A DNA stretch of 64,000 bases from Rhodosorus marinus CCMP1338. Taxonomy: Eukaryota; Plantae; Rhodophyta. The notes under the pieces were generated by a model, which did no database searches, had not been told where the DNA came from, and saw only the letters and a list, made by a program, of their open reading frames with translations. Where the stretch lies: positions 744,001 to 808,000 of the forward strand of contig JAMWBK010000001.1 of assembly GCA_029953675.1 (NCBI GenBank), given 5' to 3'. Position numbers and translations under genes: made by a program. Position 1 is the first letter of the stretch; each line of letters begins with the position of its first letter. This document shows, piece after piece, positions 7,749-58,704 of the stretch.

Positions 7749-7963
7749 CAAGTAAAGCCACAAGCACCTGATTTGTCAATACAAAGGGAGGCTTTTTACC
7801 TCCCAACCAATGCTATGACAGCCTGTCTAGTACAGAAGACTAGATTCATTGCATAAGCCTTTCACGCCGAGAGGAAATCATGATTCACGATATGGAGTGA
7901 AAGCTTGTCATACCGAGAAGCAATCATAATTCAAAGTCTGGACCGGAGATGATTGACTAAGAG

Positions 7964-8486
7964 TTGGCTACACGGTCAAGGTGGAATCGACACAGCCTAG
8001 TCACCCTCCGCAACCACCTCTACTCGTTGCATCGCAGATCTCCTGGTCTCGGACGCAGCCGCCAGACGCTCAGCATATGTGGAGCTCACTGTCGCTTGCC
8101 CCGTGTCCGGTACATACCCCCCCTTCTGCCGCTCTCCGCAGGGGGAGAGGCAGCTCCTGTGCTTCACCGCATGAACGAACGACGGTACGCCGAGAGATGG
8201 CCAGTCTTCACCGGGAAGAGAGCCGGTCTCACAGGTTCCAGCCTTTCATTGTGGAAACCTTTGGGCATCTGGAAAATTCAAGCTTGGAGTGGCGACGCAC
8301 GTGTTTTACCGAACCTCCTGAAGAATATCTGGTGGTCATCCGCCGTTTAAGTATCGCACTCTGGCGATATTCTAGGAACATGCTCGCCGAGGCGCGCCAC
8401 CGTCGCCTGGGCTCACATGATCTTCTTCCTAGCCCCTAGTTCCCCTTAACGTTTTGCGTAGCGCATCAGGCAATGTTAGTAAAACC
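7964..8486 (+). mobile_element. 5'-truncated, degenerate non-LTR retrotransposon (CRE/RLE-type endonuclease end), copy A
   Basis: Frames give RVGYTVKVES...ADLLVSDAAARRSAYVELTVACPVSG...RFQPFIVETFGHLE, matching the restriction-like endonuclease region. Co-linear with the inverted copy at 10110-10700. Confidence 0.7.
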
Positions 8487-8490
8487 ATAA

Positions 8491-8961
8491 CGGAGTGGTT
8501 ACGGAAATGTTTCGCTGAGCATCCTACCGAATACTTGGAACTCTTTTATGCCGTTTAAGTGTCTCTCCGCGGCGATATTCTAGCAGCATGCTTGCCAAGG
8601 CACGCCTTCGGCGCCTGGGTTTGCACGCTTCCCTACGTAGTTCGTAGTTCCTTTTCAGGCCTTGCGTAGCGCTTTAGGCTATGCTAAAAAAAAAGGAAAG
8701 CTTCGGTCACATGGAGAAGTCGGGTTTGGAGTGGTTGCGGAAATGTTCTACTGAGCATCCTGTTGAATACTTGGAACTTTTGCGGCGTTTAAGTCTCTCT
8801 CTCTCTCTCTCTCTGTGGCGATATTCGAGCAGCATGCTTGCCTAGGCACGCCATCGGCGCCTGGGTTTGCACGCTTCCCTACCTACTTCTTAGTTCCTTT
8901 TCACGCTTTGCGTAAGCGCTTTAGTCTATGCTAAGAGAACCCCGAAAAACCCCAGTAAAAC
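8491..8961 (+). mobile_element. Two further tandem 3'-end copies (B about 8491-8695, C about 8700-8935) of the same retroelement
   Basis: The block GGAGTGGTT.CGGAAATGTT...GAGCATCCT...TTGCGTAGCGCTTTAG.CTATGCTA occurs twice. Copy B ends in an A10 run, and copy C contains a (CT)10 expansion. Confidence 0.75.
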
Positions 8962-9788
8962 CGCATCGTAATATATTTCAATCTCCCAACGGTTTTTTTT
9001 CAAATTGTTATTGATTGAATGTAGCTAACAGAAAAAAAACAGTTGGGAAATTGAAATGCGTTTTAAAAAAGATGGGTGGTGTAGGGGGGTGTGACAAAGT
9101 GACTATGAAGATATTGTTGCGAAACGCGGGTGACTTGATCTCGAACCGTATTTCTAACCGAAGTGGACAAGAGCTTTGTTAGAATCTTTCGGGCACTATC
9201 TGATGAAACTTTGCGGTTCCAAAATCGTCGGAGAAAATAGGACTCGACACGAACAATTCCGCTTTCGTGAAACTCCTTCCCGACTAACCGCGTTCTATGC
9301 GATTCGATTGGTGAAACTCACACCACCAATACGCAATCTGCAGTGCCTCGCCATGCCTCTCGATTAATGTCCACGCGAATGAGCGTTTGCGCGTCCGCTT
9401 TGTGCTCAAGATGTGCAAGTAGTTTCGGTAGTGAAGTATTGGGCCGCTTGCCCGAGTCGTCCAAACCCTTCCACGGCGAACGCTACGTATTGGAAGTCGT
9501 TAAGGTCACCGATGGCATCCCGATGTTTGGCTCGTTTCCCCCCTCAGCGTTAGCTGCAGCATAACCAGTTTAATATGGGGCTCGAACGAGGAGATGGGCT
9601 CGCAGTGGGGATTCCACTTTGACGTCAATTACGTACTGCTTACCTGTGCGGTGATGACGAACGACAATGTCTGATCAAGACGACTACCCTCAAAAAACCC
9701 GAAAGGATATCTTGAAGGTTTCACCGCCGGAGGTTGACGCGCGAGTTTATCACGAATTCGGTTATGGCGCAGTCCAATTCCCGGCCGA

Positions 9789-9839
9789 AGTAGAACAGTG
9801 TAAACTGTTCTACTTAAGAACAGTTTACACTGTTCTACT
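9789..9839. repeat. Perfect 23-bp inverted repeat with 5-nt spacer; each arm is itself near-palindromic
   Basis: AGTAGAACAGTGTAAACTGTTCT-actta-AGAACAGTTTACACTGTTCTACT. Confidence 0.95.
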
Positions 9840-10109
9840 ACCCATCCGCAGCGTGGGGTTTGGCAAAGACTGTTCGTTCAGGAGTAGGGCGAAGACCAGG
9901 TATCGGGAGTCCCAAAAGGAGGCGTAAGCTGCAGCGGATTTCTTCGGTGGAGAGGACCTCAGATACCATGCTAGGAAGGTCACGAAGCCAGCACCGGCGC
10001 CAGCATCAGAAGCGGATCGGACGCGAGCGCGGGTGTGATCGTCAAGGGCAGAATTATCCACGATATCCTCAAATGCTCTACGGTTACTCTCCTGCGAGAG
10101 TATTTGTTG

Positions 10110-10895
10110 GTTTTCTAACGTAGCCTAATGTGCTACGAGACGTAAAAGGAAACTGGGGAGAAGGGCACGCAAGCCCAGGCGGCAGTGGCACGTCTCGGCG
10201 AGAATGTTGCTAATACCGCCAGAGAGCGACTTAAGACGGCGGGGGAGCACCAGATTTTCATCAGGATGTTCGGTGCAACACTTGCGCAGCCACTCCAAAC
10301 TTGACTTTTCCAAATGCCTAGAGCCTTCCACAATGAAAGTCTGGAACCTGTGACACGGGCCCTATTCCCGGGGAAGACTGGCCATCGTTCCTTCACACGC
10401 TGAAGTGCAGAAGCAGCTTGGCCGCCTGGGGAGAGCAGCAGATTGGAGATAGGTACCGGACACGGGGCAAGTGACAGCGAGGTCCACATGTGCTGCGCGT
10501 CTGGCAGCTGTGTCCGATACCAGGAGATCTGCAATGCAAGGAGCAGGAGTGGTTGCGGAGGGTGCTCGAGGCAGCGCCGATTCCACCTTGACCGTGTAGC
10601 CAACTCTGGTCAAGCGTTCGCTCAGGATGTATTTCAGGCACATGTATCTCTTCGTGCGATGACCTCCCATGCCCCATAGACGAGCCGCGGTGGTAGCGGA
10701 CAGTTGACAAGATTGCGTGAGCAGTTTTACTGGTTTTTACTAGCATAGCTTGAAGCGCTACGCAAGGCGTGGACTGTAAACAGTTTTACTGCATAGCGTG
10801 ATGCGCTACGCAAGACGTAAAAGACAACTAGGGACTAGGCAGAAGAGCATGCAAGTCCAGGCAGCGGTGGCCCGGATCGGCGAGCATGTTGCGCA
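10110..10895 (-). mobile_element. Inverted nest of the same retroelement: about 590-bp copy D (zinc-knuckle tail plus RLE) and short 3'-end copies E and F
   Basis: ORF 10362-10670 reads GGHRTKRYMCLKYILSERLTRVGYTVKVE...ADLLVSDTAARRAAHVDLAVTCP, then GQAASALQRVKERW and FIVEGSRHLEKSSLEWLRK. The 3' ends GCGTAGCGC..GCTATGC(T)AGTAAAAC repeat at 10724-10810. Confidence 0.75.
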
Positions 10896-19331: not shown

Positions 19332-19547
19332 CATCCGCGAGCCTTGTGCCGCAGCAGGTACGAGAAGAATGCCAGATTGCCAATCTGAGATTGCCCATGA
19401 GATGATTAGCGAATTTAGGCAGCAGCATGAATGGATTAGTGCATGGAGGCATCCGCGAGCCTTGTGCAGCAGCAGGTACGAGAAGAATGCCAGATTGCCG
19501 ATCTGAGATTGGTCATGAGATGATTAGCGCATGAAGGCAGCAGCATC
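19332..19547. repeat. 118-bp-period tandem duplication (2 copies)
   Basis: CATCCGCGAGCCTTGTGC.GCAGCAGGTACGAGAAGAATGCCAGATTGCC.ATCTGAGATTG..CATGAGATGATTAGCG starts at 19332 and at 19450. Confidence 0.92.
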
Positions 19548-27363: not shown

Positions 27364-27559
27364 GAGGATCAGGGCGGACTTCATATAACAAACATTGCTG
27401 GTATATATGGCGACGCACAAAGGAAGGTGGCTTGCAACATGTGCGGGAAGCAGGGACAGACATCTGTTTGCTGCATGTCCCTGCGGGAAGCAGTACCTTC
27501 CTATCTGCGTTGCCATGTATACCAGCAACGTTTGTTGTATGAAGTACAACCTGATCCTC
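27364..27559. repeat. 196-nt imperfect hairpin: 65-bp ungapped arms (56/65 complementary) plus an inner 9-bp stem
   Basis: 27364-27428 is the reverse complement of 27495-27559 with 9 mismatches; inner GCAGGGACA (27450) pairs with TGTCCCTGC (27476). Confidence 0.93.
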
Positions 27560-27654: not shown

Positions 27655-27892
27655 GGTGAGTGTTCATCTCCTCTACGACTTTCGTAGCTTTCCGGAGGAT
27701 CTCCAAGAGCACGGACTCGTCTACATATTTTACAAAATCGATCACAGCCTATGTTTCGATACCAACACGTGAGCGTGAGTGGTGTCCGCCTCCTCCAATG
27801 ATACAGGTTGAGGGCCTCGCGCTTCTAATCGCGTCAGAAACAACGGAACAATGGGAACAAGCGCTAACAACAGATGCGCGGACACTTACGTC
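27655..27892. pseudogene. mnmE: Two degenerate mnmE fragments in back-to-back orientation
   Basis: 27767-27655 (-) matches about 30957-31072 (IDF..VDES.LLEIL.KAT.VVEEM, with the intron end TGGTATCGAAACATAG). 27803-27892 (+) matches 30753-30842. Confidence 0.9.
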
Positions 27893-30187: not shown

Positions 30188-32559
30188 ATGCGGATGTATG
30201 GATTTTGCAGTGGTGCACTATGGAAGGGAGGCAAGACGAAGATTCGCCCGTCGCATGTGACGATGTCGATGTACTCGGATACGATTTATGCCTTGTCGAC
30301 CGGGGTAGGCCGTGCTGGAGTTGCCGTTGTCCGAGTGAGCGGAGCGGATGCAGGAACGTGTCTTCTGCAGCTTTGCTCCTTGGAGAAGCTCCCTGCGGCG
30401 AGAAAAGCCACCTTGAGAAAAGTCATCCATCCCAAGGCAAAAGAAGTTGTGGACGAGGCGCTTGTTCTTTACTTTCCACAGCCGAGGAGTTTCACTGGTG
30501 AAGATGTAGCTGAGCTGCATGTACATGGATCGTATGCAGTCATTAAGTCTACCCTAGAGGCGCTGAGCTTAGTAGATCCAGAACAAGGCAGAAGAATTCG
30601 TCCAGCGGAGCGCGGTGAATTCACGCGCAGAGCTTTCGAAAACGGCAGAATGGATCTAACCGAAGTATGCACGCCGAATCGAAATAGAAAGCCCTACTGC
30701 ACTTCATATAGACCGGCAGGGGCTCAAGCAAGAATCTGTCAACTTCTGTGCAACAGGTTGAAGGCCTCGCCGATCTGATCGCTTCAGAAACTACGGAACA
30801 ACGCAAGCAAGCGCTGAAGCAAATGTCCGGACACTTACGTCAGTACTATGAGAGCTGGAGAGAACAGCTTAAGTCTTGCTTAGCCTTTGCTGAGGTACTT
30901 AGACTGCAGCACAAGGCCCACCTGAGCACGTGACGCGAGTCTTGAATAACCACTCATGCGCTGGTATCGAAACATAGGCGGTGATCGATTTTGGAGAAGA
31001 TGTAGACGAGTCTGCGCTCTTGGAGATCCTGCCGAAAGCTACGGAGGTCGTAGAGGAGATGAAGACTCATTTGAAAGACGGTAGAAGGGGAGAAATCGTA
31101 CGATCAGGTGTGAAACTGGCGATTATAGGTCCACCAAATGCAGGTGAGAGCAATGACTTAGCCGACATTCAATGTGTTTGCAGCTGGAAACACTGAGGAT
31201 CTATGGACCAGATCCTTCCAGAATTCTTGTCAGGGTGGGAGGGAAATCTGTCGCGAAATGGCAGGCCGAAAAGCTCGGGCTGAGCATGGCGCAGGGCAAC
31301 CTACGTAGAGGCTACCAAATCCTAAGGGTTGTGTTGTTTATGAGAATAGTTGTGTCCAACAAGGTGTTGACAAAGCTGCTGAACTTGAACTGGTCTTTTT
31401 CATGGCGATAGGAAAGAGCTCCTTGTTGAACGAACTCGCAAGGAGACCAGCAGCGATAGTTTCACCGATAGCCGGAACGACTAGGGACGTTGTTCAGGTG
31501 AATCTCGACCTGGGCGGGTAAGGCACCGTCGACCCAGATTCTACTTGGAAGCATACTTGGACAGTGCGCGTGCTGTTCTGTCTATCCGGTGGAAGAAAGC
31601 TGTGCAAAAGCCATGGCTTGTCGAATGCTGATGTTCAGTTATGTTCTGGTGGCTCAGGATGTCAGTAGTTGTGAGTGACACAGCAGGAATCCGAACGCAG
31701 ACGGACGATGTGATTGAGCAGGAGGGCATTCGGCGGGCCTGGGCCACAGCGGAGGAGGCAGATATTGTTCTGTGCGTAGTCGATGCTTCTGAGCAGAGCA
31801 ACGACGGAAACCAGTGGTATGCGCGCTTCGGTCATAGCGAAAACTCGCCAAGTGCTTTTACACATGCAAGAAGCTATGAAACCTGAGCGGATCCCGCAAA
31901 CCGTCTTCGTCTTCTCCTCCCTTTGAAAATTAAGGATCGCGAATGACACCGTGAACACCCGAAAGATCATTGTTGCAAATAAGGCAGATCTCGTAGGAGA
32001 ACAGAAGGGACTGATATCAAGGAGTCTACAGGACGTTCCCGTGAGATATATTTCATGCAAGACAGGTTAGCACCAGTTACAAGGTTTTCTGAAGCTAAGC
32101 TGGTTGTACCTATCAACTAACACGACGCTTGTATGGTCGCCTGGGGGCAACACGTGTAGGAGATGGTATTCAGCCACTGTTGGATGAACTGGAAAAGATT
32201 ATCAAGGACGCGATTGTTGGTGACACGAAGGGGAAGGAAATGCCTCTGATAACAAGACAGAGACATAGACAGCACGTGCAAGGTACTTGTGGCAAATCGG
32301 TATTACCTTTGAGCGAGCTCATATGTCTGATTAGCTGTAACGATTACCTGCTTGTCGTTGTTTATTGAACTTTTAAGCATGTATTACCGCACTAGAGACT
32401 TTTCTTGAAGGGTGTGAGGCCAACGGCGGTACCTTGCCCCTGGACATCGCGACTGAAGAGCTCAGAATCGCGACAAAGGAGATCGGACTTGTGACTGGTA
32501 TCGTTCATGTTGAGGAAGTTTTGGATGTGGTGTTTTCTGAATTCTGCATCGGGAAGTAG
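30188..32559 (+). CDS. mnmE: tRNA modification GTPase MnmE/TrmE/GTPBP3, multi-exon
   Basis: [62 protein letters not shown]1 GPPNAG|KSSLLN, GTTRDVV, DTAGIR, NKAD and C-terminal [12 protein letters not shown]. Confidence 0.96.
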
Positions 32560-46546: not shown

Positions 46547-48093
46547 TCAGGTCGATGTGTAGAACCTTCTTCCTATGTCGTCAATTCTTTCCAGGCAAGT
46601 TGTCTCCGACCAGAGCTCAGCAAGTTCCTGAGCGGGCTCTACGCCGAACGCGCAATACTTTTTCTCTTTTCTCTCCAGGACCTCGGTGAAATGCTCTGGG
46701 TCAACGACTCTTCTCGCATCCAACCTCTCTCTTATCAAAAGCGAACTCGACAGCTTCCCTATGGGGCTAGCAACTCTGATGATGAACATGGACGACGCCA
46801 TGCCAGATCCGTACGAAAACATGAGGATTCGCTTCCCAATAAGTTCGTCTCCCTTCTCCTCCAGAATTGCGGCGAGTGAGGACCAGAGAGACGCCGTGTA
46901 CGCGTTGCCGATACGTTTTGCCAACCAATCGCCCGGTTCAACCATTTTCTTGTAAAGAGCCGATGACTCAGTGACAAACGCTTTCTCCAGCTCCTTGACG
47001 GGCACGAAACACGACAAGATCATCTTGAGCGGGCTCATCGGGAAAGACGATGCAGGTTGCAACCAGCTCAGAAGGTTTCCTTAGCATACCTTGTTCGTGT
47101 AGGAATCTGCCAAGGGCACGTCTCGAAACTTGCTCAGTTTTCCTTCTGGATCCACTACGGATGTTGAATCCGCGAGATAGTCATTGTAGCGGATTCTCGC
47201 AAAGGACTTCTTAACCATCTTGTTAAACGGCGCATGGAAAACTGCATAATCCGCAAGATCGGAAACCGATCCGCTTGATCCAGTTCTCTTCTTGAGGCGC
47301 TGATAGCAGCGATCCAGGGCCCTCAAGTAGCAGGACAGGGTTTCTGCGCCGTTGACAGTTGGATACTCGCATCCAAGCCTCGGTTTGAAAAAATCGTACG
47401 TGTGCTCCATGTGTGTTGCTCGGGCGTTGATTTCGAATCTGATCGGTGGCTGTGGGTTGATTCCAAAAAGAATCGCGACCGCTCCAGTACCTCCAGTTGG
47501 CCGAGCGGGGCCACGTTCATAAACCGCGATATCTCCACATACGACAAGACCATAACGGCCATCCCACCAAGGCGATTCCATCCATGAAAGCGTATTGAAC
47601 ACTGCTGCTGTCCCGCCATAACACGCGTTAGTGCTGTCCACACCTTCAATAACGAAGGAGAGGATACGAGTGTTTAGATCCACAAACCACAAACTGATGA
47701 CGGTACTCAAGCAAACTTTTTTCACGGCGACTTTGACACTGAGTTTTCTTTACCTTCGACATCTGTGTTTCCTGCTTGACACAAAAGATCCATCAGAGCA
47801 GTCTTGACTGATTTGCTCTTGTCAATGATCGTCTCCGTCCCAACCTCGAGCCTGCCGATGCTGCTCAGGTCCACTCCTTGCCTCGCCACCAACCTCCGCA
47901 CAGCAGTCCTACAAATCGATATAACGTCCTCCCGATCATCAACGAACGCCATCTCATCCTGCCCCAGTCCAATAGTGTACTTCCCGCTCGATACCCCATC
48001 GAACTTCTCCAGGTCCGCTTGCCTCACACACTGCCGAGGGAAGTACGTCTCAATTGCAAGTATTCCAGCCTCAGAAAGTCTCAAACCCTCCAT
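46547..48093 (-). CDS. HMGS: Hydroxymethylglutaryl-CoA synthase (eukaryotic type), multi-exon
   Basis: [39 protein letters not shown], catalytic [41 protein letters not shown] and FSYGSG. Confidence 0.96.
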
Positions 48094-48331
48094 GATTTCA
48101 GCTTGAAACAAAAAAAAAACAAAACCAGAATGGCTCTGAATACGTCAGATCCTATTTCCTCACTACACCTGACTTCCTGTTTATCCAGCAGATCTATGCA
48201 GCGAGCATTCCATTCCCCTCGCTCAAAAACCCACTTTCTTAAAACAAAAACGATGAGACGTCGTTCGTTCGTACAGATCTATCCAGTTCTAATATGTACT
48301 ATCACGTATTTGATTACTAATACTGAGGAAC

Positions 48332-50909
48332 GCCATATTCATATTACGATACTAATTTCAACGGTTTTGCCCGAAATTGTGCCCTATCTGCAAGTCAATT
48401 CGTCGATTCCAACCGGGCTGCTCAACTATTGATGCCTTATGCAAGCCCTATGGCCCTATGCCAAGGTGTTCTTCGGTGAACTCTAGGAGCAGGTGACATG
48501 TTGTGAAATGGATGGGATAGAGTACGAGCTTGTAAAACGCTTCTGCTGGATGGTTAAGGGAGTAAGAACACTGAATATGGTCGAACAAGGGTGCTATGGC
48601 GGAGGTGTGGTTGAAGGGCATCCGTCTGCGGTTTCGAACCTTACGTCTTAGCTATTGTTTATCACGCACCCCTTGATCAAGCGAAGAGTTCTTCGTGTTT
48701 AGGGAGCTGAGATGTACTGTGATTGTTCAACTCGTTCATTGTTGCAGTCGGTTGTAACCAGGAGAGTTGAGGTCGAGAGCCTCCCCGGAGATGTTGGATG
48801 CGGCATCTTTTTCTTGGCTTGTTTATGTTTGGTTTTGCGGCTTACCACACCCGTTTACTACGCGTTGAGACCCTTTCTGTTGCGGAGCACCTCTTCTACT
48901 CCCACTTTTTGTCTTAGTTTTCATGCTCTCAGGCTTGTTGTCTGAATATACAATGATGAGGTTGTACTAATACAAGTATGTTTTAGTGAACATCGACTTT
49001 CTACCGCAGTCCTTTGGTTCCTCGAATTATTTCAGGACCTGCCCGATCTCCATTTATTGCTTGCTTTGGCATGTGCAAAACTATGAGAAGCGGATGCGGA
49101 AGGAGTGCCAAGTATCTCTTCGGTTTCTCCGAGCTTGGTTTTCTCCTCTAAGATCGTGTCCGCGATATCAGGATCAAGATGTGCTGAAGTATCGAACTCA
49201 TCAGCACCTGGAACAGAATTTTGTTTTCCTTTCCTGATCCGTTCTGGGAGCTGCTAAAACCATTGTTTCCCCGGTGCGCATTGACTCTACCTCAAAGTTG
49301 CAATCGTGTATGCAGTCGAATGCTCATCATCATCCGTTTATTCAGAGCCTAAGTACCCAGAGGAAAAGCAAGCGTTCCGTGAATTTCTGCTCAAAGCTTT
49401 TCCGCCAAGCTCTCTTCCCGAAGCAAGTCGGTCTCACAGACTATATCCCACTGTGAATTTTAATTTAATAATTCATTATAGCGCTAGACCGTTGATTTCT
49501 CTTCATAATACGAATGTCCTTCAAAATAGGGAATTTTATAAACAAAAACAACACAAATATAGGGCATGAGTTAAGAATATATCTACCACATAGGGCATGG
49601 AAATGGCACTAAAAAATGGCCCTGCGGCCCTATGAAAATGGTTCAGAATCGAGGGGTACCCCTCGAGTTCTTTTTCATTATGGGGATCCCTATCGAAACT
49701 TACAAAGGGCTATTTCACTGCCCTATGTTGTAGATATATTCTTAATTCATGCCCTATGTTTGTGTTGTTTTTGTTTATAAAATTCCGTATTTTGAAGGAC
49801 ATTCGTATTATGAAGAGAAATCAACTTCCTATCGCGATAATGAATTATTAAATTAAAATTCACAATAACATACGTAGTCTGACTGCATACACGACTGCAA
49901 CTATTGAGGTAGACTTTGAAAACAAATTCTGTACCAGATTTTGATGAGCTCGATACTTCAGCACATATTGATCCCAGAACGGAGCAGGAAGGGAAGACTT
50001 GAAAACAAATTCTGTTCCAGAAGATGCTGAGTTCGATACTTCAGTACATCTTGATCCTGATATCTCGGACACGATCTTAGAGGAGAAAACCAAGCTCGGA
50101 GAAACCGAAGAGATACTTAGCACTCCTTCCGTATCCGCTTCTCAAAGTTTTGCACGGGCCGAAGCAAGCAATAAATGGAGATCGGGCAGGTCCTGAAATA
50201 ATTCGAGGAATCAAAGGACTGCAGTAGAAAGTCGATGTTCACTGGAACATACTTCTAGTAGTACAACCTCATCATTGTATATTCAGACAACAAGCCTGAG
50301 AGCATGATAACTAAGACAAAAAGTGGGAGTAGAAGAGGTGCTCCGCCACAGAAGGGTCTCTACGCGTGGTCAACGGGTGTGGTAAGCCACAAAACCAAAC
50401 ATAAACAAGCCAAGAAAAACATGCCGTAGCCAGCTTCTCCGGGGAAGCTCTCGACCTCAACTCTCCTGGTTACAATCGAGTGCAACAATGAACGAGTTGA
50501 ACTATCACAGTACATCTCAGCTCCCTAAACACGAGGAGCTCTTCGCTTGATCAAGTGGTGCATGATAAAACAATAGCTAAAACGTAAGGTTCGAAACCAC
50601 AGACGAATGTACTTCAACCACACCTCCGCCATAGCACCCTTGTTCGACCATGTTCAGTGTTCTTACTCCCTTAACCATCCAGCAGAAGCGTTTTACACGC
50701 TCGCACCCTATCCCATCCATTTCACAACTTCTCATCTGCTCCTAGAGTTTGCACCGAAGAACACCTTGGCATAGGGCCATAGGGCTTGCATAGGGTTTAC
50801 TATAGGCCATAAATGTTGAGCAAACCGGTTGGAATCGACGAATTGACCTGCAGATAGGGCACAATTTCGGGCAAAACCGTTGAAATTAGTATCGTAATAT
50901 GAATAGGGC
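48332..50909. repeat. Palindrome 1: about 2.58-kb fold-back (unit copy 1 +, copy 2 -) centred on a perfect 18-bp palindrome at 49649-49666
   Basis: 48332-49320 is the reverse complement of about 49875-50909 (66/71 identical in one checked segment). 49452-49610 mirrors 49705-49864. The centre is TCGAGGGGTACCCCTCGA. Confidence 0.95.
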
Positions 50910-50920
50910 AGATAGGGCCG

Positions 50921-52550
50921 ACCCTATGCATAGAGCGATACTAATTTCAGTGGCTTTGCCCCTTGAATTATGCCCTATGCATGCTCGATGGCCCTATGTC
51001 AAGGTGTGCTTCATACCTCTATGAGCAGCTGAGGAGTTATGAAATGGATGGGATAGAGATCGCGCTTGTAAGATCGATTCTGTTGGGATGGTTAAGGGAG
51101 TATGAACACTGAATATGGTCGAACAAGGGTGCTATGGCGGAGGTGTGGTTGAAGTACATTCCGTCTGCGATTTCGAATCAGACGTTTTAATTATTTTTTT
51201 ATATCATCCACCACTTGATCAAGCGATGGAGCTGTAAGTGTTTAGAGATGTACCGTGCTTGTTGAATGCGTTCCTTGTTGGGAGTGCTATGTATCTCTTT
51301 GATTTATCCCAGCATAGCTTTCTCCTCTAGGATCGTGTCCGAGATATCAGGATCAGGATGTGCTGAAGTGTCGAGCTCGATATAGTTGATATAATTAATA
51401 TAATTGATTGATGTAATTGATAGAATTGATCGAGATGGTTAGGTGTGGCGAGCGACGACATGATGAGAGAACAGCGTCGGTGACTAACGCCCTAAGCTAC
51501 ATTCACGATTGCAAGATTGAGGTAGAGTCAATGCAAACTGGGAAAGCAACGGGTTCACCAGTTCCCAGAACGGAACCAGGAAAGGAAGACCTGAAACCAA
51601 AGTCTGTACCAGAAGATGTTGATGAGCTCGATACTTCAGCATATCTTGATCCTGATATCTCGGCACTATCCTGGAGGTCAAAGCAATAGAGATACATAGC
51701 GCTGCTTTGCATCCACGTCTCAAAGTCTTGCAGAGCCCAAAGGAAGCTATAGAGAGGATCGAACACATCCTGAAAGTATTCGAGGAATCAAAGGGCTAGC
51801 TACGTAGAAAAGTCAATGTTCACTAAAAAAAAGAAGCATGCGTGTATCAATACAACCTCATTAATGTGTATTCAGAGAGAACAAGCCTGAGAGCATGAAA
51901 ACCAAGACAGAAAGTGGGAGTAGAAGAGACGCTCCGCAACAGAAAGCAGTGAAAAAATGATCTCACCGCAATGTAAACGGGTGTGGTAAGTCACAAACCA
52001 AACATGAACACGCCAAGAAAAAAGACGCCGCAGTCAGCTTCTCCGGAGAAGCCCTCAACCTCAACTCTCTTGGCTACCACCGACTGCAACAATGAACGCG
52101 TTCAACAAGCACAGTACATCTCAGCGTTCTAAACACTTAAGAGCTAGCTCTTCCGCTTGATCAACTGGTGCATAATAGAAAAAATAGTTAAAACGTCTGA
52201 TTCAAAGCCGCAGACGGATGTACTTCAACCACACCTCCGCCATAGCACTTTTGTTCGACCATATGCAGTGTCCAAACTCCCCTAACCATCCGAACAGAAT
52301 CGATCTTACAAGCTCGAACCCTATCCCATCCATTTCACAACTCCTCAGCTTGCTCATGGAGGTTCACCACCGAAGCACACCTTGACATAGGGCCATTGGG
52401 CTCGCATAGGCCCCCTCGCATAGGGCTACTATGGGGCAGAAAAAGTAGAGCGCGCAGGTTGGAATCGACGATTTGACCATTGGATAGGGCACAATTAAGA
52501 GGCAAAACCGTTGAAACTAGTAAAGGAATATGCATAGGGCAGATAGGGCC
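50921..52550. repeat. Palindrome 2: about 1.63-kb fold-back of the same unit (internally deleted copy 3 +, copy 4 -)
   Basis: 50921-51390 repeats the start of copy 1 (e.g. GAACACTGAATATGGTCGAACAAGGGTGCTATGGCGGAGGTGTGGTTGAAG). 51505-52550 is an inverted full copy ending ATAGGGCAGATAGGGCC, as copy 2 does. Confidence 0.93.
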
Positions 52551-52562
52551 TGCCCGATTACT

Positions 52563-52598
52563 ACCCTACTAATAGTACTATTGTACTATTAGTAGGGT
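52563..52598. repeat. Perfect 16-bp hairpin with 4-nt loop at the right edge of the array
   Basis: ACCCTACTAATAGTAC-tatt-GTACTATTAGTAGGGT. Confidence 0.95.
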
Positions 52599-53206: not shown

Positions 53207-54075
53207 TTAAAGATAAACTCTCTTGAATTGCGGATCTGCCACAACTTCCACAGGAGGCGCCCCTGGAGCACCAAAGTCCTTAAGCAGGAGAGTAGAAATG
53301 AAAGCGTCGAAAACAGTGATTGACCATTGCTCTTCGTGACGTCTAACCAAGCCGTCTCCGTCAAGGAAAAACTTCGTCTTCCCTAAGAACGCCTTCACGG
53401 AAGGTTTCCAAGGCAGCCTTAGGACCCCTTCTAGACGCCACTCAGCGACGATGAGTTTATCTTCAACAATCTATTCGGAAAGAAAACAAGACCAGACCTT
53501 AGGGCTTTGTTGAGCTCTTCGAAGATACCCAGGGAACACAGCTCATGAGCTCGAGCCTCAGTTCTTATGCTACTCACCTCGATGCTTAGCAAATCACAGC
53601 GGGAAAGCCGTCTATTGAAGAGGTTGGAGGCAGCGTCCCTGTACTTCTTCAAGTCACGAATGGGCAAATCCGGGTCCGGACTATCGAAGAAGCAGTCGTC
53701 TCGATATATTTGGGATGTTAGCGCACCAGTTATATAATACTTATTAACCAAAAAATCGTCTCGAAGGATCTCAAAAACTTGCTCTGTACTCAGTTTCGTC
53801 CTCTTAAGCTCCCCGGTCTGTAAAAAGGGGCGAATATCCAACCTCTTATGCCGAGATGCCACCCAATCTGCAACTACTTTCACCGCGTCCGCAAAGTCCA
53901 CCGCCCGCCTCCTTAGGAACGGGCACTTCAACTGCTCCGCGCTCTCTCGCATTCTTTCCAGCTTATCCATACCTGTCATCGCCATCGTCAACCTCACGGA
54001 CCTCCTCATCCCAAGCGATCTTCCCCTTCGATCGGGGTTCATCGGTATTCCCCCAACAAACGACAAGTGCGACAT
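53207..54075 (-). CDS. DUF2358/SnoaL-like (NTF2-fold) plastid-type protein, 2 exons
   Basis: YYITGALTSQIYRDDCFFDSPDPD...KKYRDAASNLF|...RLEGVLRLPWKPSVKAFLGKTKFFLDGDGLVRRHEEQWSI; transit-peptide-like start MSHLSFVGG. Confidence 0.75.
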
Positions 54076-54250: not shown

Positions 54251-54400
54251 CCGTGATTTTTCTTCAACAAATAATACAATATTACATGCTATTACTGATT
54301 ATAGGTATTTTTAGAGTTCGTATAAACCGTGATTTTTCTTCAATAAATAATATAATATTACATGCTATTACTGGTTATTGTTATTTTTAGAGTTCGCATA
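54251..54400. repeat. 76-bp AT-rich tandem duplication
   Basis: CCGTGATTTTT.CTTCAA.AAATAAT..AATATTACATGCTATTACTG.TTAT.G.TATTTTTAGAGTTCG starts at 54251 and at 54327. Confidence 0.9.
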
Positions 54401-56248: not shown

Positions 56249-58704
56249 ATGGAGGGCGCAGAACAAGTATCAGAACCCGTAGCGCCCAAGCGACTATCGT
56301 TTTCGAGTTTCGAGTGGTTTGAGCGAAAAAGACATCGTGGTCCCTCGAATGGAGTAGATGAGCTCAGTAAAATATTTCCAGAGGATGAGGAGGAAGGGGT
56401 GGAGAGCTCAGCGAAGCGATTCAAACGGAACCAGTCTAGGAGGTAAGCTGGCAAAGTTGATATTGTATTCTGCTTTTTCGAAGACCTCGACTGGCTTTAT
56501 CAGTTCAACTAGTAACCGTTTTCTCTTCCCTTGCTCTGATCAGATTTGGGAGGCGTGTTTTCAAACGACCACGAACTCCGCCGCCTGTAGTCAAGCCTAC
56601 AATGGCTAATAGAGTCCCGACGCCCCCGCTCGTATTAGCTCAGGACTCTACTCTAAACGAGAAGCTCTATGTTGCGAGGGAGAAAGCGAAAAAGGCTATT
56701 GGAAACCCCCAGTTCTCTCCCTTGGGGTCCTCTGTTGACCTCGTGGCCGACCTTCGTGTATCGTTTACAATACATTTGTATATCGACGGGTATACGAAAG
56801 TGGATGCGGTACCGCCTAATGGCAGTCAAGCAGCGCAGAAGCCACCGTTGAGGTATCCATACAACAGACATTCACGGGATTTTCTTCTCGCCCTTGATCT
56901 TGGTTTGATCCCCCCCCGGGAGGACCTTCCGGACCCCGGATCGTGCTCCTACGTAGCGGGTTGTTTGGTAGCGGAACTGCATGACCACCGGTCCAACACG
57001 GCAATAAGATCGAGGAAGATACTCCTGAGACCGGACGGATTGAGCATTGTGAACGATATCAACCATCTAGATGTGGCTTCAGAAGGCGAAGAATTTGTTG
57101 GCCTTTTCGTGGAGAGTGACATTCTCCGAGTGACGAAGCGGGTTGATTTAAGACCATTCGACGCGGAGCGCTTCCACCGCTATGGCTATCGGTCGAGCAC
57201 GAAGTTGAACATCTGCCGCATGCCAGGCTTTGCGAAACGACTATCCGAAGCGAGAATCCCGCTCACAAGTCAAGCCCTAGTGCTGGTGGCGGGAGCAAAC
57301 GGTAAGCTGTGGCGTTCACTCCGCGAAACCATCACCGAGCCTTCTGGCTTCTTTTAAAAATCACAGAGTGAAGTACTGAACAAAGCTGCGTTCTCTTCGT
57401 TTACTCCGCCTAGGTCTACGCAATCCTTGGCGCAAGATTCGACCGGAAAATAGGATTGCCCTTTCCTCGCCCAGGCCGACTGGAAGAGAAATTAGTGCCC
57501 CATACGGAAAGGATTTGCCGGTACCGGTAAAGCTGAACGAGTTATCCCTGAAACCCTATGCGGAAAATGGGTCACGGATTCGGCTTGTTCGGTTGCATGC
57601 GAGAACTACAAACCCTATGACTGGGGCTCCTACCGAGCACTATTATCAGCTAGAGCTTAACTTCAGGCAGAAGAAAGGCTGCGAATGTACGATTCAGAGG
57701 GGTCCAGAAAAACCCGTGGATGGCATAAAGGTAAGCGAAAGCGGCCATCCGGGCTCGCCTTGACATGGGTCTCCAACTCTTGTGGACACAGAAAGTCGAC
57801 GTGATTGCTTTTTCATTGTGCTCTTTGCGTCAATAGTGGTACTGACAAACGGTCTCTTTGTACTGTCTGTATTCTCAAGAGGAGCTTCGGAAGCGTTCGG
57901 GACGGGCACAGGTTTGTTGACCAGATGAAGAAAATCAAGAAGGCAGATGGATTCGCAATAATGTTGGATACGAACGATATGGACGCCGCTGCGATGGCTC
58001 AAAAGCTGCGGAGGTCTTCGGTCAGTGCAGGCCGTGGTTCTGATGGCGGTCCTCGGACAACCGTGGGTTCGAATGTTGTACAACAGCAGCGAACTGCACA
58101 GGAAATGCAGATGCAGAATGCTCAGCAGCGTGGAATGCCACGGGCTGCACCCAACCCAGCGACGTTCGCAAATACGATGCCAAGAGCCGCTATATCCAGG
58201 GCAGCTCTAACAGTGAACAGCTCTACTGGCTTAATGGCTGGTAACCAAGGATTTCAAGATTCGCAGCGGCAACAAAGTCAGAACCCTCAACAGAATGCGC
58301 GAAGCCAGCAGGGTAGGCAGCAGGAAATGCAAAAGTTCCTCCCGCAAGCTTACCAAATGCAGCAGTCGCAGCGCCAGCAGCAAATGCAACCGCAGTCCCA
58401 GGGTCAACAGCAGCAACAGAGACATGCTCAGGCCCAGCAGATGTCAAACAGCACACAGCAAGGCCTTGTACAGCAGCAGCAAATGGCTCGGACCTGGAAT
58501 GGTAAACAGTTTAAGCGGGAACCCGGCACAGTGACAGGCCCGGGCGCAGCCAATTCTTCGGTTCAAGGTGGTTATGCGAGACCAGGGGTTCAAAACGCCG
58601 GCAATAGTGGTGCTCCCATTAGCATGAGAGGCAAGTGGACGAACCAACGCACGACGGGACCAATATCCCCACCCCAAGGGTCTGGGTCGATGCAAAGAAA
58701 GTGA
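56249..58704 (+). CDS. SPT20: SAGA subunit Spt20-like protein with Gln-rich C-terminus, multi-exon
   Basis: SFTIHLYIDGY...YPYNRHSRDFLLALDLGLIPP...SYVAGCLVAELHDHR...KILLRPDGLSIVNDI resembles the Spt20 domain; poly-Q low-complexity tail. Confidence 0.72.

Follow-up and report, generated by a model that had tools for sequence, protein, structure and literature searches.

A four-copy, alternately inverted array in the red alga Rhodosorus marinus: most likely an old copying error of local origin in non-coding DNA

Palindromic amplicons and related structures

Among the closest described systems to the structure reported here are the products of inverted-repeat amplification that depends on an origin (ODIRA), fold-back inversions and duplication-inverted triplication-duplication rearrangements (DUP-TRP/INV-DUP). 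The inverted amplicons of yeast are bounded by short interrupted inverted repeats and later undergo one-arm deletions between short repeats, and a model has been put forward in which a hairpin-capped intermediate replicates into an inverted dimer (PMC4689423). We analysed a stretch of 64,000 nucleotides from Rhodosorus marinus CCMP1338 (NCBI GenBank assembly GCA_029953675.1, contig JAMWBK010000001.1, positions 744,001 to 808,000), called here the window and used for all coordinates, and we describe in it an array made of four alternately oriented copies of a single non-coding unit of about 1.3 kb (+ - + -, 48332-52557). As in ODIRA, fold-back inversions and DUP-TRP/INV-DUP, the copies alternate, and the tail-to-tail and head-to-head junctions each have a short palindrome or interrupted inverted repeat at their centre; as in ODIRA-type amplicons, the array is interstitial, its flanks are kept and later deletions between short repeats have removed parts of one arm (PMC4689423). 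Nevertheless, ODIRA gives an odd copy number (2n+1, with the central copy inverted) and involves a replication origin, whereas the array has four recognisable copies, to which a fifth, since lost, may once have belonged, and no known origin. It also differs from ODIRA amplicons in that its unit measures only 1.3 kb and in that the events are old enough for a divergence of 9-24%. A local accident of copying, long past, is the most likely source of the array, more so than a new element that moves or replicates itself. We regard the array as a further instance of a kind of structure already known, with a plausible origin in replication or repair.

Large gene-converting palindromes, such as those of sex chromosomes, consist of two arms of 10 kb to Mb size around a short asymmetric centre. 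The array resembles them in that its arms are closer to each other than are its paralogous copies, and in that homogenisation is weaker at the outer boundary; its arms, however, are 1.2 kb long, only 83-95% identical, gene-free and visibly decaying. Inverted-repeat (hairpin-RNA) loci give rise to small interfering RNAs (siRNAs), and share with the array long, nearly complementary arms and a predicted hairpin that would be very stable if transcribed. In contrast to such loci, the unit of the array matches no gene in a protein search.

Another comparison is offered by the Foldback (FB) and Galileo elements of Drosophila. The '2 TIR' copies of Galileo carry terminal inverted repeats (TIRs) of 0.3-1.2 kb and 7-bp duplications, and the repeats within their TIRs are secondary transposase sites (PMC3573991). 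With FB and Galileo '2 TIR' copies the array has in common kb-sized inverted arms with little middle, a repeated arm motif, the lack of coding sequence and a short flanking direct repeat (PMC3573991). It differs from them by the absence of matching inverted termini at the flanking repeat and of tandem subrepeat arrays; moreover, no other copy or transposase is known for it, and its dimers are direct in-phase copies and not independent insertions.

Anatomy of the array

The presence of four alternately oriented copies of one unit, first proposed in an earlier note made from the sequence, was recovered by a repeat finder, by blastn of copy A against the window and by a four-way MAFFT alignment. 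The overall layout of that proposal stands, and its borders are here refined. Copy A (48332-49657, + strand) is the longest; its head begins GCCATATT and lacks the outermost 12-17 nt that are present in B and D. Copy B (49658-50921, - strand) has a complete head, ending in ATAGGGCAGATAGGGCCGA, contains an internal 83-nt tandem duplication (49916-49974 / 49999-50057) and misses approximately 135 nt of A. Copy C (50922-51378, + strand) begins with CCCTATG, at the unit position where A also starts; missing from it are the tail, a large internal segment (approximately unit positions 413-771) and a further one between two GCCCTAT motifs. Copy D (51497-52557, - strand) has a complete head, ending in ATAGGGCAGATAGGGCCTGCCCGA, and a tail cut at approximately unit position 985. 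Between C and D, the alignment leaves a spacer of 118 nt that is unrelated to the unit (51379-51496) and includes an AT-rich 9-nt repeat (GATATAATT) at 51379-51430.

The centre of the first palindrome is a perfect 18-nt palindrome, TCGAGGGGTACCCCTCGA (49649-49666), with about 45 nt of scrambled arm on either side. The 95 nt once taken for a spacer between A and B are in fact the badly diverged continuation of the arms, which reaches this palindrome. The head-to-head junction between B and C, ATAGGG-CCGA-CCCTAT (50903-50928), is a short interrupted inverted repeat and is asymmetric; as DNA, it folds into a predicted hairpin of -27.6 kcal/mol (z = -6.6). These two junction centres may stem from inverted repeats that were present before amplification, as in ODIRA.

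Copies A and B are 90-95% identical across most of the unit (86.7% overall, when the scrambled tail is counted), C and D 83-92%, and A or B compared with D 75-87%. The single unit has no TIR, since its head compared with its reverse-complemented tail scores no better than shuffles, and a TIR transposon made of a single unit was discarded for this reason. Tandem subrepeat arrays were not found in the arms by Tandem Repeats Finder; copies of the motif GCCCTAT are scattered, two of them being adjacent pairs. Neither blastn nor the repeat search detected a further copy of the unit within the window, and blastn of the unit against the window revealed no similarity to its surroundings. The most conserved 21-24-mers of the unit had no match in one viral and two metagenome contig scans, and exact look-ups of its open reading frames (ORFs) returned no record.

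The structure is confirmed as real. Long-read libraries are known to fail at palindromes, and such an array could in principle result from a chimeric read of the fold-back type or from a repeat that was collapsed or expanded in assembly; a fold-back chimera or mis-assembly, however, would give nearly identical arms, whereas the copies differ from each other by 9-24% and by many block indels, several of them private (the 83-nt tandem duplication in B, the approximately 135 nt found only in A and the two deletions in C). The CCMP1338 assembly is built from long reads, polished and composed of megabase-size contigs (Lee et al. 2023, PMC10250338), and the 4.2 kb of the array are well inside the read length. 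An assembly or sequencing artefact is thus extremely unlikely, in agreement with the initial judgement that sequencing noise was an improbable cause. Among the differences between A and B we counted 74 transitions and 92 transversions with no excess of C-to-T changes, a spectrum that looks neutral; repeat-induced point mutation and deamination were considered and left no signature in it.

Relationships among the four copies

Site patterns were counted at interior informative positions where all four copies align. These group A with B and C with D at 31 positions, A with C and B with D at six, and A with D and B with C at two. The ends of the copies give another picture: A and C begin at one unit position (GCCATATT / CCCTATGC), B and D run 12-17 nt beyond this start (TCGG(GCAGG)CCCTATCT, in unit orientation) and, in the outermost 60 columns, B and D are 88% identical versus 75% for A and B. 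Since A and C have a common start and B and D a common extension, [C D] is an in-phase direct copy of the asymmetric dimer [A B], and the two dimers are related as in-phase direct copies and not as mirror images. When the end of D is joined to the start of A, the real B/C junction is obtained, save for one 24-nt gap.

This relationship bears on the origin initially suggested for the array, namely rolling-hairpin replication of a hairpin-ended replicon or breakage-fusion-bridge cycles. Both would account for copies that alternate, for the presence of tail-to-tail as well as head-to-head junctions and for the short palindromes at the centres of these; however, they predict mirror symmetry, with A similar to D, B similar to C and mirrored flanks, and are contradicted by the similarity of A to C and of B to D, by the asymmetric B/C junction and by flanks that are not mirrored. 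In addition, the array is interstitial, with both flanks unique and intact, and protein and Pfam searches in all frames found in it no remnant of Rep/NS1, HUH, protelomerase/telomere resolvase or transposase proteins. We regard such an origin as highly improbable.

A disagreement of this kind between interior and end structure is expected if a dimer was copied in tandem and its arms were converted afterwards: the interior places A with B, while the ends and the 60 outermost columns place A next to C and B next to D. This pattern in the alignment suggests arm-to-arm gene conversion, which would have been less efficient at the outer arm boundary.

Genomic context and a syntenic relative

The array occupies a gap of 5.1 kb without annotated gene, between a DUF2358 protein gene and the gene for HMG-CoA synthase in the NCBI annotation record (GCA_029953675.1, JAMWBK010000001.1), which is 100% identical to positions 38000-58093 of the window. 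Both neighbours are annotated as intact, as had been stated before: the HMG-CoA synthase coding sequence lies at 46547-48093 on the - strand, with its start codon (48093) 239 nt from the head of A, and the DUF2358 gene at 53207-54042, also on the - strand, with its 3' end facing the array. The window as a whole is eukaryotic nuclear DNA, with PPR, ALIX, ESF1, Spt20 and HMG-CoA synthase genes that contain introns.

In a relative whose HMG-CoA synthase is 69% identical (contig L001 of Logan), the DUF2358 and HMG-CoA synthase genes have the same order and orientation, and the region between them measures 1.83 kb. It contains no direct or inverted repeat of at least 30 nt, no GCCCTAT and no similarity to the gap in the window. 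The array is missing from this syntenic gap and is therefore not an ancient conserved feature of the intergenic region. Contigs from closer strains, with 84-87% nucleotide identity (L004, L005 and L006), end at 48054, 52794 and 53249, respectively, short of the array. One of them, L005 (JGI 3300017118, from a related Rhodosorus strain), aligns to 54167-52794, covering the DUF2358 gene with its intron and approximately 400 nt past the stop codon, and its alignment ends 237 nt before the array; its extent suggests that the 3' untranslated region of DUF2358 approaches the array.

A proposed local palindromic amplification and the observations it has to face

We propose that non-coding DNA was amplified here as a palindrome, long ago and at this locus only, and give this explanation an even chance of being correct. 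The series of events that we infer is the following. A segment of about 1.3 kb would have been copied in inverted orientation, giving a tail-to-tail palindrome; probably an intermediate of replication or repair folded back or switched template at a short palindrome (GGGGTACCCC at the present centre). The resulting dimer, asymmetric because one arm was 12-17 nt longer on the outside, would then have been copied once in direct phase to yield the + - + - arrangement, and this second copying would have created the head-to-head junction at the short interrupted inverted repeat ATAGGG-CCGA-CCCTAT. Gene conversion from arm to arm would have kept the arms within a palindrome more alike than the palindromes are to each other. 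C and D would have been worn down by deletions between short direct repeats, in part GCCCTAT, which would also have left the centres of the palindromes scrambled or replaced.

Several observations weigh against this proposal. The left breakpoint of the second duplication must coincide with the end of the A/B homology, and gene conversion is deduced from only four sequences. That the amplification is specific to this locus is unproven, as it rests on 64 kb of a 31-Mb genome plus the viral and metagenome scans. The GC content of the array (44.6%) is close to the lowest in the range of the window. Plain intergenic DNA does not explain the enrichment of GCCCTAT, which looks like a set of subterminal binding sites of an element, and the 8-mer GATTACTA on either side of the whole array suggests an insertion. 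The motif, the flanking 8-mer and a perfect hairpin adjacent to the array are, in fact, left unexplained by a local amplification, and are described below.

GCCCTAT occurs 22 times in the window, against 4.35 expected, with 20 occurrences in the array and two in the remaining 60 kb. At either end of the unit it is directed inward: the head has four to six copies, on the unit strand, and the tail has two, on the opposite strand. It is also found at the starts of A and C, at the B/C junction, at one of the deletions of C and at the borders of the scrambled A/B centre. The candidate protein-binding motif is GCCCTATG. Two occurrences of CCCTATG, at 57554 and 57613, lie inside the Spt20 coding sequence and were set aside as unrelated to the array.

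The 8-mer GATTACTA, read from the sequence, is present on the + strand at 48312-48319, to the left of the array, and at 52556-52563, to its right, where it overlaps the last 2 nt of D; a shared 8-mer between such flank windows is expected for 0.77% of random position pairs in the window, a figure calculated post hoc. Between the left 8-mer and the start of A there are 12 nt, ATACTGAGGAAC (48320-48331), that have no match elsewhere in the array and are missing from the B/C junction. The outermost ends of the array, which on the left stand behind these 12 unrelated nt, are not inverted copies of each other. Directly after the right end, at 52563-52598, there is a perfect hairpin with a 16-bp stem and the loop TATT. 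The hairpin follows the right-hand 8-mer directly, and one of its arms, TACTAATAGTAC, is similar to the sequence that flanks the array on the left, GATTACTAATACT.

An inserted element as an alternative

Motif and 8-mer could be accounted for if the array were an integrated, as yet undescribed palindromic element of red algae, either a non-autonomous foldback transposon or a hairpin-capped or inverted-multimer replicon, with GCCCTAT(G) iterons at its ends and GATTACTA as its 8-nt entry site. We consider this unlikely. If the motif-bearing unit turns out to be dispersed or extrachromosomal, red algae would have their first described element of the foldback or palindromic type.

In the first of these forms, rather unlikely in our view, [A B] would represent the two inverted arms, each of about 1.25 kb, of a non-autonomous foldback-type (long-TIR) DNA transposon with GCCCTAT(G) as transposase-binding sites, inserted with an 8-bp target-site duplication (TSD) and then duplicated in tandem, with other copies and an autonomous partner elsewhere in the genome. 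The long inverted arms, 90-95% identical over most of their length and with nearly no middle domain, would agree with such an element, as would the strong enrichment of the motif, its inverted placement near the unit ends and its presence at breakpoints. The direct repeat of 8 nt on both flanks has the length of the TSDs that hAT elements make; a few hAT fragments are present in the genome, 4% of which is unclassified repeat, and the GC content of the array is below that of its flanks. Nevertheless, the sequences beside the two 8-mers are not mutually inverted, the left one being separated from the array by 12 unrelated nt and copy A lacking the outer 12-17 nt. The Galileo '2 TIR' copies are comparable in their arms (PMC3573991), but the arms of the array are not made of tandem subrepeats and the unit has no TIR of its own. 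A second copy was found neither in the 64 kb nor in the one viral and two metagenome scans, no protein among the 5.8 billion predicted proteins searched resembles any frame of the unit, and DNA transposons make up only 0.03% of the genome.

The second form, integration of an extrachromosomal palindromic DNA, is quite improbable. A hairpin-capped linear molecule or an inverted-multimer circle, derived from a 'dog bone' to inverted-dimer intermediate of the ODIRA type or from a plasmid-like replicon, would have arisen elsewhere and recombined into this intergenic site through 8 nt of microhomology (GATTACTA). The array is circularly permuted, with the end of D and the start of A recreating a head-to-head junction of the B/C type; a simple tandem duplication, however, predicts circular permutation equally, and the B/C junction requires a deletion of 24 nt relative to the virtual D/A junction. 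Four copies, an even number, fit the ectopic integration of an inverted multimer, whereas ODIRA in situ gives 2n+1 (PMC4689423). The 8-mer on both flanks, the dissimilarity of the unit to its surroundings, the short syntenic site without array in the relative and the perfect hairpin at the right border are also compatible with such an integration; against it, neither a source copy nor a free form is known, and the array has no replication protein or recognisable origin.

The 8-mer and the 12 nt beside it, which resemble a short flank duplication and a filler stretch, lead to a further alternative, in which the unit would be nuclear mitochondrial DNA (NUMT), namely the non-coding constant region of mitochondrial minicircles (records OK643888-OK643971), of which end joining would have captured several fragments. 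The mitochondrion of R. marinus has 13 minicircles of 2-6 kb that share a non-coding constant region and are present at no less than 100-fold the nuclear copy number, and NUMTs were described as abundant in the genome (PMC10250338). The unit, like this constant region, is non-coding, and it has no relatives in the protein search. Nevertheless, protein and Pfam searches found no fragments of mitochondrial genes in the array, minicircle concatemers are head-to-tail and, according to the supplement text, the minicircles of R. marinus have no inverted repeats. Fragments inserted together should, moreover, have diverged equally, whereas A and B are far closer to each other than to C and D, and the common start phase of A and C also speaks against this alternative. 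A mitochondrial origin is very doubtful.

Coding capacity, RNA and possible effects

In tblastx comparisons among the copies, the six frames are conserved alike and stops are present in every one. When copy A was translated in six frames and compared with 5.8 billion predicted proteins, no relative reached E <= 0.01, and Pfam returned no family at E <= 0.1 for the three forward frames of the whole array; as the unit occurs in both orientations, these three represent all six of its frames. A coding gene or pseudogene was ruled out by this equal conservation of six frames, by the stops and by the negative protein and Pfam searches. One short ORF is common to A, B and D; in the alignment it is frameshifted between the two pairs, and most of the substitutions in it are non-synonymous. 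Among the large ORFs of the window there is no transposase, reverse transcriptase or Rep, and the absence of a transposase in cis, already remarked upon in the earlier note, extends to the protein and Pfam searches of the array.

Rfam returned nothing at gathering score in the whole window and, below threshold, only hairpin-shaped microRNA-precursor models, far under their cut-off, at the palindrome centres; ARAGORN found no tRNA genes. An RNA gene was also considered for the most conserved core (48479-48660) and discarded, as Rfam gave no real match and ARAGORN no tRNA there. A block of 26 nt that is invariant across the four copies may be just a conversion tract.

The potential for kb-scale double-stranded RNA noted earlier agrees with the folding prediction, by which the arms would form a very stable hairpin if transcribed: the 441 nt around the A/B centre, folded as RNA, reach -247 kcal/mol (z = -27.8). 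A role as hairpin RNA or in siRNA production is, on this folding model, conceivable. Given the energetics of cruciforms, arms with 5-10% of mismatches and with centres that are scrambled are unlikely to extrude one. We see no sign of function, present mobility or replication in the array; any effect would be indirect, through hairpin RNA made by read-through or through the spacing or regulation of the HMG-CoA synthase promoter, 239 nt away.

Other local duplications in the window

RAD52 was reported to be lost in the algal class to which R. marinus belongs, and frequent microhomology-mediated recombination was argued for its mitochondrion (PMC10250338); carrying this link over to the nucleus is speculation on our part. 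The array offers a natural example of how small palindromic amplicons form, duplicate, homogenise from arm to arm and decay, in a red-algal lineage reported to have no RAD52. The window also contains local inverted and tandem duplications and hairpins that are unrelated to the array, which points to a genome-wide tendency rather than to one element. Several inverted duplications and perfect hairpins within 64 kb raise the question of whether nuclear repair, once RAD52 is lost, moves towards events of the fold-back and microhomology type. Only two perfect hairpins in the 64 kb have stems of 11 bp or more (9789-9839 and 52563-52598), each at a locus of local duplication.

A second inverted repeat, unrelated to the array, pairs 7960-8487 with 10108-10607 (78% identical over 530 nt), and the ORFs on its arms had no Pfam match. 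Its locus (7960-10892) further includes tandem copies of about 210-250 nt at 8253-8941 and an extra partial copy at 10783-10892, and the hairpin at 9789-9839, with a perfect 20-bp stem and an 11-nt loop, lies between the two arms. At 27364-27559 there is a self-palindrome of 200 nt (75%). Close to it, a piece of a TrmE/MnmE-like GTPase gene (a TrmE exon piece) is present in inverted copy (27657-27773 and 30953-31069, 88%), adjoined by a direct copy (27803-27892 and 30753-30841, 81%).

Among direct repeats, two 97-nt copies at 19332-19546 are 93% identical, with starts 118 nt apart, and an AT-rich unit of 76 nt is duplicated in tandem (92% identical) at 54251-54400, between the DUF2358 and Spt20 genes. 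At the beginning of the window, an ORF at 67-735 matches the alpha subunit of bacterial-type glycyl-tRNA synthetase (Pfam E = 8e-97), presumably a nucleus-encoded enzyme targeted to an organelle.

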